DNA of 64,000 nt. Origin: Geosiphon pyriformis uo1. Taxonomy: Eukaryota > Fungi > Glomeromycota. The stretch is from positions 124,001 to 188,000 of the forward strand of contig JAAOMT010000563.1 of assembly GCA_016748015.1 (NCBI GenBank). The letters run 5' to 3'. Shown in pieces: positions 41,140-47,968 of this stretch (its first letter is position 1; each line of letters opens with the position of its first letter). Below the pieces are notes generated by a model that saw only the letters and a list, made by a program, of their open reading frames with translations, had not been told where the DNA came from and made no database searches. The position numbers and the translations under genes are program-made.

Positions 41140-43369
41140 CTACACCGTGATTGTAACTGCATGCTTTTCTGAAAACTCGGACATTTCTGGGAAATTAGGC
41201 AAAGCTTCCTCAGTGACATCATCCCCGGATGCCTTTTTTAGGAAAAGAAAAGCTTGAGCGTCGATGGTATTGCACAAAAATTTTATCAAGTGAAATAATT
41301 ACGATGGTACGCCAGAGTAAATGGGTCGTATTGCTTCTAGAATGGTTATGAAGTTACGCTCATATAAATACTTACAATCAACGCTGCCCAATGCCGAATC
41401 ATTTTATCATTCAACTGCAGATGCAAATTTTTCTTTATTTCAAAGCACCCAAGCGGATGTTTTTCACATCGACCAATGTATTTTGATCGTAAAATTGCTA
41501 TTGCCATATCATAACGGTACTTGAAACTTTCCGGTTCATTCTATCGATAAAAAGAAATCATAAATATATTCATTGAACATAACCTTATTTGGATTCTAGC
41601 TTACCGGATCTGCTTCTGTCATTATCATGTCTAATTCTCGCTTCCGTCGTCCTATTGAGGAAGGGGAGCATTAGAAAGGGATTAGAAAGTGTCATAAATC
41701 AAAAAAAATATGCAAATTTAACATTATTCACTTTTAGGAGCAACATAATTTTTGCCATTGCTTATCCCTTGCGAATGGAAAATCTAATGTGAGAACATTT
41801 TGTCTCACAATTTGATTAGATAACTTTAGGCAAACCTCACAATTTACGCACTTTTCCGGCTTGTTTGCTCGGCTCTGGGTGGAACATAATCTTCATCAGG
41901 TTCATCAGGTTCTGTGTAGTGCAAATTACGACGTGGCCTCCTCAACGAAGATGATGGTGTATTTGTACCCGTTGAGCTTGGACCAGCTTTTTGTGCTGTC
42001 ACAGTTTCATCATCAGAATCTTGAAGCATAAAAATAAAAATAAATTTGAAGTTGCAATTAAGTGTCCTATATTAGATAACAACTCTAAATAACTGTTACC
42101 AATATTTATCACTGTGGGTGTAGGTTGTGAGGATTCCCCAGCAGTTGGGTGTACAAAAGTCTGTGGTGTTTCAGTGACCTCTCCAGCAGGATCCATTTCA
42201 ATCCCTAGCATAGCAAGAATTGCTTCTGCAGGACGATTTTGGGGATCTAATTGTTGGGGTAATGATTGAGACTGAAATAGTGATTTCGGTAACGATGCAA
42301 CAACTTGCGGAATATTGGTACTAATGATGCCTCTTCCAATAGATGTTGCATGCGTTGTACTACTGCTACCCGGTGATGCTGGCCGTATAGGCGAATATTT
42401 ATATCTATGAGAGTTTGATATTGAATTTCCGGTATTATGGAATGTATTATTAGGTGTCAAACTATGCTGTCCTTGGCCTGTGTCACTTGATACCATTAGG
42501 AAAGACTCTTCTTGAGTATTCATTAAAGCAGCAGCCTCACGAGCTTCTCGCATACTCTTTGCAGCAGCCTCTTCTTCAATTTCTGCCGTTAATTTTTTCA
42601 CTCTCGGGTGCTTTCGGATTTCCTCCCATCTTTCTAGATGTAAAACTTCATGATGATATTTTTTCAATGCGGCAACATACCATTCCACACTGCGTGGGTT
42701 ACTTGTGTCAGCCTTGAAACGCATGTAATTACAAAGGCCGTCAACTTGCACAGGAAAAATTGATCCATCCGGATTTATCCAACGATTTTTTTTGGCCAGG
42801 GCCTCATAGGATCTACCAACTTGAAGATGATGCTGTCTTTTGGTTTTTTTTGCTTCATCACCTGAGGCATCATTCCTTATTTGTGTCGGTGAGGTTGGCG
42901 CAGTATTAGAAGTATAATTATAAAGAGGCTGAGTAAAAGGTATTGAATTAGGGAAAACTCGACCATCGCCCAGGGATTGTGGGTCTGGAACAGGAATGGT
43001 GAAAGTTTGTTGCTGGCGAGGCACACTTTGGTCTATTTGTGAGGTGGTGTTAATCTTTGGTGGAAGGGCAGAGACGTGGTTTCTATTGAGGTTTTTGTTA
43101 TTGGGAACTTTATCCTCTTTTTCCAGGTTAATCACATTAAGGTTTCCACTTTCCGGAGGCGTCGCTGAGCCTATACTGACAGGGTCATTTTGCGAGCTGC
43201 CCTGGGTCTGATTATTGGGTGTTGGCTCTGGATCGAGATCAATAATGGTGGGTGGTGGTTTGGAGCGAGAGGTCGGGGTAACTGTCGTCGACGCGTCTTT
43301 GTCTGTCACGACACTAGTAGTTTTAAGTGCTTGTGTGTTTTTAGCAGTAGCTTGTCCTTGGATTTCCAT
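41140..43369 (-). CDS. Hypothetical protein with a tyrosine-recombinase core-binding (SAM-like) domain and a C-terminal C-x2-H..C..H..WA domain, multi-exon
   Basis: ATG 43369 (MEIQGQ). Internal RSYEALAK..IFPVQVDGLCNYMRFKA..PRSVEWYVAALKKYH..IRKHPRV. Downstream spliced exons LRSKYIGRCEKHPLGCFEI..HLQLNDKMIRHWAALI|ASGDDVTEEALPNFP..TV*. Confidence 0.7.
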
Positions 43370-43618
43370 ATTACACTGGTTTTTTTGACACCTTTTGGGC
43401 TCGAACTTTTGTACTGAAGGTGCAGTGCGTAACTTGTGATCGCCCAAATATATGATCTGATAGGGCGTATAATTATGAAGAATGATAATCACGTGTATAA
43501 TATATACGGATATAGGAAGATAGCACGAAGCAGATAGTCGACCTGAACCATCAATCAATGGTACCAACAAACTTAGAGTCGGTTCTTCAATCTCCTCCAA
43601 TTTTGCTATTCCACCCAA

Positions 43619-45243
43619 ATGACTGACAAAGAACACCTTTCCAAAACCATAGAACAAGGTTCTAATAATCCTTCACTACAAGTAGAAGCCGGTAATAAAG
43701 GGAAGAAGCCTTTTCCGCACTTCAACGTCTCATTTCCTTACGCTAGGCAACCCGACATCAGTGAAGTATTTCGAAATTATCCAAGGATACTCTGAAAAAC
43801 TCTTAATTTACAGAGCCTTTGCAACTTTTCGTTTCTTGCTTATCAATCATTAAAAGTTCGAGCAAATCAGAAAGATGTATATTATCAACGGGTGCTCGAA
43901 GAACAAATGACAAATGTGTTTCGACAGTTCTTTGGTGAGCTTATATATATATATCACTAATTTATATGTGAGTAAAATTATATGTGATTCGAATAATTAA
44001 CGCGGAATTCAATTTTAGGGACCCGCAGTCAACATTATTATCAAAAAGAAGTAGTGCTATTGTCTGATCTCTTTTATTTTTGTTTGACAACTTTAGTTGG
44101 TGAGTTATAGCATAAATTGTATTCTTTCTTCACCTGGCTAATTATAAATACTCTTTTACTAGGAACTCAAACTCTGGGTGAAGAATACTGTGATATATTG
44201 CAAGTTTCAGAATCTACCAAAAAGTTTCCGAACTTTCAAGTTAGCTTAATTTCTTTTGTGAGAAAGAGCGCTGAATACAAGATTATTATTAAATTTCATT
44301 ATCTAATTATCTGAATGATTCAGAGAAGAGCTACCCAGATTTTTTGGCACGCGATATTCCCTTATTTTTACACTAGAGGCACGGCTGAAATTCGTAAACG
44401 TACCAAACCCTCTTGGCGCGAGCAATTTCAAGTGGAAACCGGAGGAGATACTAAATACAAAACTCGGTTTCGTGAATTTTTACATAAATACCTTCCAAAA
44501 ATTCAGCTATTTTTCACAAATCACATACATCCCTTCCATTTGGCGATCTTTTATTTTTTTGGGGCATATTATGGATTTTCCAAACGGCTTACTGGTATCC
44601 GCTACGTATGTAAAAAAATCAACCTTTTTGCTGTCAAATCATAAATAATCTGATGATTCATTGTCAGCATCCATTTCTTGGATTAGATTTTCACTCGACA
44701 ATTGTCACCCAATGAGCAGCATTTTGGCTATGAAGTTCTTGGATTCTTACTTTTAATCCAGCTCATAATTCAAACCTATCAATATCAAAAACAATTATCG
44801 AATGGAAATGAGGATAAGAATGATATAGAAGAGGATTTCGAAGCCGAAGAGTATTTTGAAAATATCGATTTGAATCCCTCGTTATATTTATTTTTATTAA
44901 CTCCTTTGGCTTGCCATGTTTTTCATCTAAATAGAGACCAAGCTGATTTTCTTTTCACCTCTTCAATGGGTCTTACTCCTCAGGAAATCAATGCTCGAAA
45001 ATGCACTCTTTGTCTTTCACCACGCATAAACACTACCGCCACTGGCTGCGGCCATTTGTTTTGTTGGTCATGTATAGCAGAATGGTGTCGTAATAAGGTT
45101 CATCCGAAGCAATATGTTTATTAAATTTCTTGCTAATTTAAATTTTGTGTTAATATTATTTTCTTGATTGTATCCAGCCTGAATGTCCGTTGTGTCGGCA
45201 ACACATCAATCTGGCTCATCTACTTCCAATTTACAACTATTAA
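43619..45243 (+). CDS. PEX10: Peroxin 10, RING E3 ligase, multi-exon
   Basis: FPYARQPDI|[49 protein letters not shown] and [22 protein letters not shown]|PECPLCRQ. Confidence 0.95.
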
Positions 45244-45252
45244 GGTATTCTT

Positions 45253-46980
45253 AATGCTGGAATTGGTTTTTACTTAACATTATTCTCAGTGATAGAGTAT
45301 AGGGAACCCACAGATAAACTGAGTGCCTAGATCGAGAGTTTTCTTTAATCGTCATTCATTTGGAGCAGAGCTTGTGGTCATTATAAAAGATAGCCAACTG
45401 AGAAAATTCAAAGTAAAATGTGCAAACTTTTGTTTGGAAAAGCTTCGCAGATCAAAGGAGAGGAAAGGTTTGTAAAGGTAGGCAATAAATGGTTGCTGGG
45501 CCGAATACTTTGGTCTCTAAACTTCAGTAGTACGCTGAACTTGCGTTGCCAACCACCGATGTTTGACCTGATCAGTAACGGTTTGACTCTTCATGCTCTG
45601 AGTTTAGGTGACCTGCAAGATTACTCTAAATTCTACATAAGGATAAAGGAATTCCCCACCCCCAAAAAGAGGTTTTTTTAATCAATTATAAACTGAGTGA
45701 AAAATTTTGACTCACAACCATCCAAATATTTAATTCAAGGTGGTGTGAAAGTCTGCTCCTTGAGACTTTCTAATCAACGGAATCCCAAATGGCTTTGGAT
45801 ATTAGTTTGCAAGTGAATACTAACTGGTAACCACTTTGAGCATGAAAAACGATAAATGATCGTATCTTTAAACTTCAATCACTATTTTTGCCTCTTCTCA
45901 CCACTTTAACCAACACAGGTAAAAGTTGTATGTAGTTATGGTTCCACCCAATTATCGGGACCAAAAATTCTTTTACTATTTGTTTGGATGTCAAAATAAA
46001 TACAAGTTTGGGCTATCACTCTTCCAGCATTTTAGTTCCACCAATATTCAAATTGGTCTTTCCATATTAGCTCAATGAATTATTTATCGAAATCAGCATG
46101 ATTTAAAATCAAACTTTATAGTCTCCTACGATTACATTGCGAAATCGTTTTCTATTATATTCCCGTTTGGGTCTTATAAGTTGTTGGTCATTCTCAGAAT
46201 ATCAAATGTATCAACCCCTTTTTCAGAAACTTTCACCGATTAGAATGGCTCTCAAGCTTTGAGAGGGGATAACTATTTAATTAAATCAACAAATAGTTGT
46301 CGGTGGCTCCTATTTTCCTCCCCCATCCGTGACTTGCATTCAAAAAATATTTAGTTGCGGGTGGGTGTTTCCTTTATCCTTCCTTATTGATTCAATTATT
46401 GCCGAGACGAACTCAGCGAACCCCCCATTCACAATTTTCGGCTAAGACTTGATACTGGAGCCACTTTCACAATTATACCATACTTGGTAGGGGCCAAGTT
46501 ACCGACCCGTGCCGGTTGGCACTGGAGGCCACTCGTGACTTACATTCAGAAAATATTTTGTTGTGGGTCGACTTGTCGTGAATGGCATATTTTCTAAATT
46601 TATTTTAACACTGCTCCACTTTGTAGTTTTTCGAAAATTTAACAATTTAATAACAAGAGCGCTTCCTCTATCCATATTTATGCCTAAGACTTTCATTCAA
46701 AAAATATTATTCGCACGTCGATTTATAATGGTGATTATATTAGATGGTGATTATATTAGATGGTTTGGTTTCTTGCGGTAGTTAACAGAACAAGTCTCAC
46801 TTTGGGGTTTGGGCCCGTTTGATGTGATCGCTGATCGTGGTATTTTTTTTGGAATGCGAGAAAGTTTTCTTTGACCTAGGGTATTGAAACCACTTTTGAT
46901 TTCAACAATAAAAATTTTTTTTGGTAAATCTGAAAAGATGTTTTGGCAACTTTGGGTTCGATTTTGACTTGAACCTTGGG
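45253..46980 (+). ncRNA. Candidate large structured RNA (independent ncRNA or very long structured PEX10 3' UTR)
   Basis: No credible ORF, CpGs retained, many nested and crossing helices with G-U pairs favouring the + strand, and a repeated 21-nt motif (see findings). Confidence 0.5.
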
Positions 46981-47968
46981 TTCATGGTTATGAAAATTAG
47001 ATATAATTAAATCCCAGCGTGTAATCAATTTGGTTTGGGTAAAGATTACTGGATAGATATAACTTTTTGATCACCCCATCAAGCAAAGCCTTCATCAAAG
47101 CCACTTAAAAAGCCAACTTGGATACTATTTGTATCACTTAAAATTTTTATATAGATTTGTTCAAATCGAATGATGATTTTTATTCTTTTAATTGAATTGT
47201 AAATTAATTTTATTTGTTAATAAATATATAATTTGTTTTAATTTTAAAACATAATTAAAAATGATTTTATGATTTTATTAATTATTTATTTATTATAATT
47301 AAAAATCAATTTATATTTATTAAGATTTTTATTATTATTAATGCTTTAACAAAGTGAGGTCCTTCCACTACCTACGCACGCAAAACACACGTGTTCTACA
47401 ATAGGCGCTTTCTGCACGTGACTTATATTTATTAATATGGTTAAAAATTAATAAAAAATATAGGCATATAAAAATTGTGAAATATAAATAACTTAAACAA
47501 TAGACGAAATTAAATATTTCTACTTGTTTAATCGAAAATATTAAAACAATTTGCCATGTTGTTTTTATTAATCAATTTATAAATTTCTGCATAAAATTCA
47601 CAAAGGATTTGAAATTTCTAGAATACTCATTTTTATTATATGCTGGCTGTTGATACATCCGACTTCTAAAAGCCGTTAAATATACAAAAAAATATATTGA
47701 TTTTTTGAGGTATCCATGTATAGTAATAAAATGGACATGAAAATTTATGGAGGGAACAGCGGAGTTAGAAAGGAAATATAATACATTGATTTGGTTAGGA
47801 AAATATTCCACGTATAGCCAAAAATTTGGGGGAAGTATTAATATTACAAGGGAGTCGAATAAATAATATTTAAAGGTTTTGTAAAGTGGAAACGAGAAAA
47901 TAATTTCAACCTGTTTAAAAACCGCAATAATAGACCATTCCCACATTTCCTTCTGATAACCAAAGAAA

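Follow-up and report, generated by a model that had tools for sequence, protein, structure and literature searches.

Plant target mimics include IPS1 and At4, directed to miR399, and the short tandem target mimics; IPS1 has a single site with a 3-nt bulge. TAS/PHAS transcripts, for example the two-hit TAS3, are non-coding RNAs with more than one small-RNA site. In mycorrhizal fungi, kinase genes number in the hundreds to thousands and the Argonaute sets are expanded. The miRNAs miR482/2118 target the P-loop codons of NLR genes, with variation at the third codon position, and the same study found little miRNA-driven change in the targets (PMC5026261). In Rhizophagus irregularis, a cluster of miRNA-like hairpins (loci 338-345) was described (PMC6399891, PMC9757828). 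For relatives of the fungus studied here, the accessible part of one report gives Dicer, HEN1, expanded AGO and RdRP, and 24-nt loaded small RNAs; on kinase control in mycorrhizal fungi, that part reports methylation and transposon proximity and mentions no motif-specific small RNA (PMC8647823). A literature search of incomplete coverage returned neither motif-specific small RNAs nor mimics for kinases in mycorrhizal fungi.

Geosiphon pyriformis (Glomeromycota, Archaeosporales) carries a two-locus array of kinase-loop mimics, which is real and undescribed. The window is a stretch of 64,000 nt (contig JAAOMT010000563.1, positions 124,001 to 188,000), and its coordinates are used for the first locus, located beside PEX10 (Table 1). 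The interval between the convergent genes PEX10 and IQG1 comprises 1.85 kb at GC 0.36, followed by an AT-rich spacer with a dispersed repeat. An original prediction, made from the letters alone, had described there a region lacking a credible ORF, with its CpGs kept and no AT erosion; ORF and Pfam checks of the stop-free pieces agree with the first point, and a CpG o/e of 0.70 and the GC of 0.24 in the adjoining spacer agree with the second. Apart from the motif described below, the region is single copy in the genome, not a multi-copy transposon. The dispersed repeat is unclassified and ends in CACGTGAC, and one related copy is transcribed.

Table 1. Features of the PEX10-side locus (window coordinates).
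Feature	Position	Strand	Remarks
PEX10 last coding exon and stop	45178..45243	+	Context, outside the element; stop 45241-45243
5' half	45245..46250		Non-coding, GC ~0.35; no RNA contig, no similarity to second locus
44-nt segment	45639..45682	+	Complementary to 46338-46381 (copy 1 loop, 3' arm and flank)
11-bp hairpin	46268..46301	+	3' arm AGTTGY common to motif hairpins, loop diverged; z -3.8
9-bp helix enclosing copy 1	46302..46310 with 46457-46465	+	Pair probability 0.8-0.98
Motif copy 1	46322..46365	+	R D L H S K N I codons, 46328-46351
RNA contig	46340..46610		Strand not given by contigs; depth 3.8; covers copies 1-2
Motif copy 2	46528..46572	+	R D L H S E N I L codons, 46534-46560
Motif copy 3	46685..46711	+	D F H S K N I I codons; 3' arm lost; can pair with 46838-46868
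Perfect 16-nt tandem duplication	46728..46759	+	Either copy pairs 18-19 bp with 46815-46833
U-rich stretch	46838..46868	+	Imperfect motif complement; energy within control range
Dispersed ~100-bp repeat	47330..47422		At least 21 genome copies; right border, outside the element
IQG1 stop codon	47969..47971	-	Context; convergent with PEX10

The surroundings gave two further observations. The TatD gene of the window has its nearest relative in Ambispora. Between TatD and PEX10, a gene without Pfam match (41999-43500) is syntenic in Ambispora, Diversispora and Rhizophagus, and is a conserved orphan of mycorrhizal fungi.

The region had been predicted to be densely base-paired, which the helix counts do not support: perfect helices of at least 8, 9, 10 and 11 bp number 45, 11, 3 and 1, against 36, 9.9, 3.0 and 0.9 in 100 shuffles. 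The eight long-range complements that had been listed are all present, six as perfect Watson-Crick helices and two with G-U pairs, and the caution that a few matches of 8-10 bp are expected by chance was well placed, complements of 8-11 bp being at shuffle level. The folding z-scores proposed as a check are likewise unfavourable for the region as a whole (for 45250-46035 the MFE z is -1.5 whichever strand is folded; 46036-47100 gives -1.1). One large, densely paired 1.7-kb fold is thus unsupported, with helix counts at chance and no fold conserved in the paralogous locus. A 13-bp helix turns up in 7% of the shuffles. The 13-bp complement 45639-51/46369-81 does extend as predicted, to a 44-nt pairing (45639-82/46338-81) with a score of 24 reached by none of 100 shuffles; AT-rich windows elsewhere do reach this score. 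This pairing, which would compete with the hairpin of copy 1, is the sole link between the two halves; through this one helix the 5' half may belong to the element.

Local structure is above chance at a few places of the 3' half, namely the hairpins of copy 1 (46322-65, z -3.9) and copy 2 (46528-72, z -2.5) and that at 46268-301, while 46245-46730 taken as one unit gives z -2.3. The local hairpins of the original prediction fold, with two weak ones among them, 46401-42 (-6.0 kcal) and 46805-16; the latter had been likened to telomerase P6.1 and reaches -3.7 kcal. G-U mismatches had been taken to indicate a + strand RNA. When G-U pairs are allowed, helices exceed the shuffles on both strands (194 vs 158, and 157 vs 119), and an excess so similar does not tell the strand; the two motif hairpins favour the + strand over the other one (z -1.5 and +1.0 there). 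Rfam covariance models gave a best E of 1.3 for this region and 3.7 for the second locus, and the tRNA search found none. The element is non-coding and probably transcribed; its 3' half bears + strand hairpins and has no match among the described RNA families. The word GTTGTCGGT lies at 46296-46304, at the foot of the 46268 hairpin, with an estimated chance probability of ~1%. At 46448-46476, a stop-free stretch of 68 codons reads L-D-T-G-A-T-F-T-I-I, like a retropepsin active site; it is the only such word in the window, has no genomic relative or Pfam match, and is probably due to chance.

A motif of ~30 nt, absent from the original prediction, occurs three times within 46328-46711 (starts 46328, 46534 and 46685). 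In copy 1 a 13-bp stem, which contains tandem U-G/G-U pairs, presents the site in its 18-nt loop. The only other genomic DNA resembling the region is a non-coding island of ~1.4 kb before a convergent RGS gene on contig C718 (L002 700-2100 = C718:2171620-2173020), with three motif copies 248 and 242 nt apart. A covariance model found these two loci and nothing else above noise among 150 scored candidates, in agreement with strict patterns. The copies keep one orientation per locus and are 80-94% identical over 30-40 nt, whereas the spacers of 150-250 nt are unalignable, a contrast from which we infer selection on the motif. Ends of the C718 island are closed by nested long-range helices (756/2007, 765/1994 and 778/1981 in L002), unlike the window locus.

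Neither such a region nor the motif was present at the PEX10 loci of Funneliformis, Diversispora, Rhizophagus, Endogone and Calcarisporiella, or at the TatD loci of two Ambispora and Paraglomus; the PEX10 search returned no Ambispora PEX10, and a single-exon search with IQG1 returned no mycorrhizal contig of useful length. In viral, bacterial and metagenome collections the strict motif patterns match nothing, and a loose pattern gave 26 metagenome matches, all single, stemless and AT-rich.

On the + strand the motif spells R-D-L/F-H-S-K/E-N-I(-L), the catalytic-loop codons of ~190 kinase loci. The loop is that of the tyrosine-kinase-like family expanded in mycorrhizal fungi. The six copies translate as RDLHSKNI, RDLHSENIL, DFHSKNII, YDFHSK, CDLHSKNI and RNLCSKNV, and copy 2 is the nearest to real kinases, with 21/27 positions identical to locus L160. 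A degenerate pattern for the kinase loop matched the genome 149 times and its reversed control 5 times; four of the six copies fit it, and the loci fetched from its matches were kinases for the most part. A tighter pattern had 64 matches against 0, of which three are copies of the element. The chance of such a match was estimated as ~2e-8 per position, that is ~1e-4 within the few kb of both loci, before allowing for the number of recognisable motifs. A second kinase family (47 exact loci, D-L-H-P-G-N-I) shares with the motif the TTG/TTA dimorphism and both flanking blocks. In all six copies, a central A(A/G)AA is fixed in place of GG, which sets them apart from nearly all kinases. Outside the loop, DNA and protein profiles of 10 kinases revealed no kinase homology, and there are no notable shared 13-mers; as the profiles match the loop codons and leave the flanks unmatched, the element is not a kinase pseudogene.

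Two other occurrences of similar words were observed. At least three family-2 kinase loops are followed, ~1 kb further downstream and on their own strand, by a 19/21 match to the motif that has the central A run; the match sits where a dispersed repeat akin to 47330-47422 ends (L157/L158, at C534:69904 and C589:22915; C685:27347; C789:141; C440:7491); it is either chance or a second site behind a kinase gene. In another repeat family (L081, L161, L162), the word T-D-L-H-S-K-N occurs outside the kinase frame, within chance expectation.

A functionless relic would account for the array by capture of a kinase fragment, tandem duplication, one duplication between contigs and homogenisation by gene conversion, with the low RNA coverage as read-through noise. 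We regard this as doubtful. Global folding near chance, low RNA depth, the lack of an ortholog in the loci examined and the synteny breakpoint at the PEX10 flank (see below) would all suit it, as would the 19/21 match at repeat ends in five places, which implies that such words can arise in this genome. It has difficulty, however, with the short conserved copies amid unalignable spacers at two loci, hard to obtain neutrally, with flanks free of kinase homology, and with a CpG and GC content that is not eroded.

It is also unlikely that the motif acts by its shape, as an RNA (or DNA) element that binds protein and was perhaps first acquired from a kinase gene: a wobble-rich stem and an A-rich loop with the palindrome AAATATTT, with loop-loop kisses possible, in an RNA serving as sponge, scaffold or long 3' UTR element. 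Conservation of the 3' arm GTTGYGG reaches past the kinase match, stem changes are mostly one-sided and pair-keeping, and AAACATTT of C718 copy 2 and AAATGTTT of C718 copy 3 are exact reverse complements, which would be expected of such an element; this reciprocal CA/TG pair in the C718 loops is, however, one observation. Covariation in the motif stem is not beyond shuffles, the C718 copies fold no better than shuffles (z +0.5, +0.5 and -0.5), and copy 3 kept the codons but lost the stem. A shape would, besides, leave unexplained the match to both kinase families and the recoding of the site.

This recoding concerns family 1, the largest kinase family, which uses C/G-ending codons at the motif site. 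In 46 open-frame family-1 kinases, which are not independent samples, G or C is the last base in 6 of the 8 codons of the site and in 16 of the 94 conserved codons outside it (Fisher p 0.001; by permutation, 0.0005 for this stretch of codons and 0.045 for any stretch). Both site leucines are CTA, used nowhere else in the family consensus. The bias is independent of the element's own sequence and falls on the same 24 nt. Either a G-rich guide well matched by family 1 or an escape from an A/U-rich guide would account for it. The G/C codons of the site are retained at 0.67-0.87, against 0.65-0.92 for other G/C-ending codons; as they decay like the others, the recoding may be a founder event, and no current selection is indicated.

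In silico, + strand copies and antisense sequences from 69 family-1 sites give a duplex in which a 4x4 loop separates a helix of 14 bp from one of 7 bp. The median energies for three copies are -26, -29 and -27 kcal, against -9 for controls (best -17), and the other three + strand copies pair weakly (-9 to -15 kcal). Three of the six copies thus present target-mimic geometry towards a hypothetical guide, the kinase antisense, and three do so less well; this geometry is not proof, since any AT-shifted sense copy pairs with antisense through U-G wobbles. Minus-strand copies, conversely, reach -18 to -25 kcal with AT-type kinases (L159 and L160; L163 for copy 2) and only -5 to -17 kcal with family-1 mRNA. 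Within the two loci, other antisense partners of the motif did not exceed the control range.

The minus-strand energies would be expected if the loci were instead sources, in which minus-strand RNA, made by RdRP or arising from IQG1 and the RGS gene through read-through or as long 3' UTRs, gave putative antisense small RNAs against the kinase catalytic loop; the biggest family would have escaped by C-ending recoding and then expanded. A single guide could cover G, K and E codons, because U in the guide reads A and G. Most family-1 changes (T to C) make A-C mismatches, at each locus a gene on the minus strand ends 0.7-1.3 kb away from the nearest copy, and three states occur at a single position, which is a third codon position, as in miR482 (PMC5026261). 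We nevertheless consider a source improbable. GAC in family 1 strengthens the pairing instead of weakening it, and a guide with two central G-U pairs and 1-2 mismatches is poorly suited to slicing, family 2 included (-12 to -23 kcal). The long stem with star strand of a miRNA or milRNA precursor was not found: + strand copies lie in loops, minus-strand copies lie outside miRNA-like stems (28-60% paired) and the window hairpins fold worse on that strand, and only copy 3 has an irregular pairing partner (46838-46868).

Evidence of transcription comes from the contigs of one RNA run, which show presence without strand. One contig covers copies 1-2, and the C718 cluster is likewise covered. Spliced PEX10 RNA assembles into a contig of depth 22 whose end, at 45271, is 28 nt past the stop codon, and no RNA contig covers 45324-46243, although absent contigs are weak evidence alone. 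The idea, present in the original prediction, that the RNA is processed from the PEX10 transcript is not supported, given this contig end and gap and the paralogue, which has no upstream + strand gene. That PEX10 has a long regulatory 3' UTR here, or a transcript from which an RNA is cut, is accordingly very unlikely, even though the region begins directly after the stop, the 44-nt pairing joins its halves and a contig gap proves nothing. In Funneliformis, Diversispora and Rhizophagus, moreover, a convergent pantoate ligase gene lies within 77-250 nt after PEX10, leaving no room for the element there; the PEX10 junction is therefore a synteny breakpoint, with no orthologous sequence.

Telomerase RNA had been another hypothesis for this region, whose size fits and for which the TER of Ustilago, cut from an mRNA 3' UTR, is a precedent (PMC9564094). 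Ustilago maydis TER carries a 9-nt template (PMC9564094). The region is like it in length class and in position behind a coding gene, but has no template; candidate helices for the pseudoknot, CR4/5 and P6.1 occur at chance level. Telomeres of the assembly (contig ends L004, L006 and L010) combine TTAGGG and ATAGGG repeats, which alternate strictly in places. Against these arrays the longest template-like match in the region is 6 nt on the + strand and 7 nt on the minus strand, which bears out the earlier remark that no template was seen; a template of ~1.5 repeats, ATAGGG variant included, is absent from either strand of both loci (best 6-7 nt). It could be missing only through an assembly error, and the RNA contig 46340-46610 matches the assembly without difference; two paralogues with repeated kinase codons would also be left unexplained. 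The probability of a telomerase RNA is practically nil, and the locus is struck from the candidates, while the mixed arrays constrain the search for the true template of G. pyriformis telomerase RNA. Upstream of the second locus, the AT-rich spacer has a 9-nt telomere-template word, TAACCCTAA (L002 315-323), of which ~0.15 are expected by chance. The U-rich stretch proposed as an Sm-like site near 46841 is an imperfect complement of the motif. SECIS, U1A-loop, Sm-site and branch-point/3' splice-site readings of the motif, compared by eye, fail at required positions that vary among the copies.

A small-RNA link of any kind appears to us about evenly balanced. Our preferred version of it, held tentatively, is that the core (46260-46870) acts as a + strand RNA and binding platform for putative antisense small RNAs that silence kinases. 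It would be a weakly expressed non-coding RNA displaying three imperfect kinase-loop copies, with a C718 paralogue of the same design, and would bind antisense small RNAs aimed at the most conserved motif of the expanded kinases. A hypothetical guide would pair with the two ends of the site and leave 3-4 nt mismatched at its centre, so that Argonaute would bind and not slice, as in plant target mimics. Kinase silencing would be buffered or relieved, or RdRP might be recruited as on TAS-type transcripts. The kinase codons are matched by six copies at two loci, of which three pair well in silico in this geometry, RNA contigs cover both clusters, and family 1 is recoded at the site; the strand of the RNA, its guide, the Argonaute binding and any effect on kinase RNA are inferred. 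A binding site is favoured over a source because the fixed central mismatch is the defining feature of target mimics, because the window copies belong to + strand hairpins, that of copy 1 leaving the site exposed, and because the copies are not in precursor-like stems. As expected for an endogenous target mimic, no ORF or Pfam match was found, and both clusters are covered by RNA contigs.

The array resembles plant target mimics in being non-coding RNA with sense sites, several per RNA, that would pair around an unpaired centre, here towards a hypothetical guide. It differs from IPS1 in its 3-4 nt mismatch loop, three sites, two loci, hairpin-loop sites, many U-G pairs and fungal origin. With miR482/2118 it shares a short non-coding match to the most conserved motif of an expanded, fast-evolving signalling family, but those have fold-back precursors, miRNA/miRNA* duplexes and sequenced products; the target here is a kinase loop, and, unlike the miR482/2118 targets, the site is recoded in one family. 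The array thus belongs strictly to neither the IPS1-type mimics nor miR482/2118, and the likeness would hold only if the proposed binding does. More than one candidate small-RNA site and a possible RdRP recruitment recall TAS/PHAS transcripts; here, in contrast, the sites copy a protein motif. Reverse complements from the R. irregularis cluster end in YRUUUA after a variable centre of 5-6 nt, as the motif does; there, unlike the motif, YRUUUA is the AT-rich closing stem of ~110-nt hairpins. The internal motif of that cluster is not above control in the Geosiphon genome (12 vs 34), and the likeness is probably chance.

It is possible, if short of probable, that Geosiphon has a dedicated small-RNA circuit against the kinase loop, in which two loci act as decoys or guides and the site has been recoded in the largest family, as an independent fungal counterpart of the plant miR482-NLR system. 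If so, the codon recoding would be the visible footprint of the conflict. An array that copies the motif common to all these kinases predicts a peak of small RNAs on the 24-30 nt site. Should this hold, no natural target-mimic or miR482-like system would have been described earlier in fungi, as far as the literature searched shows.
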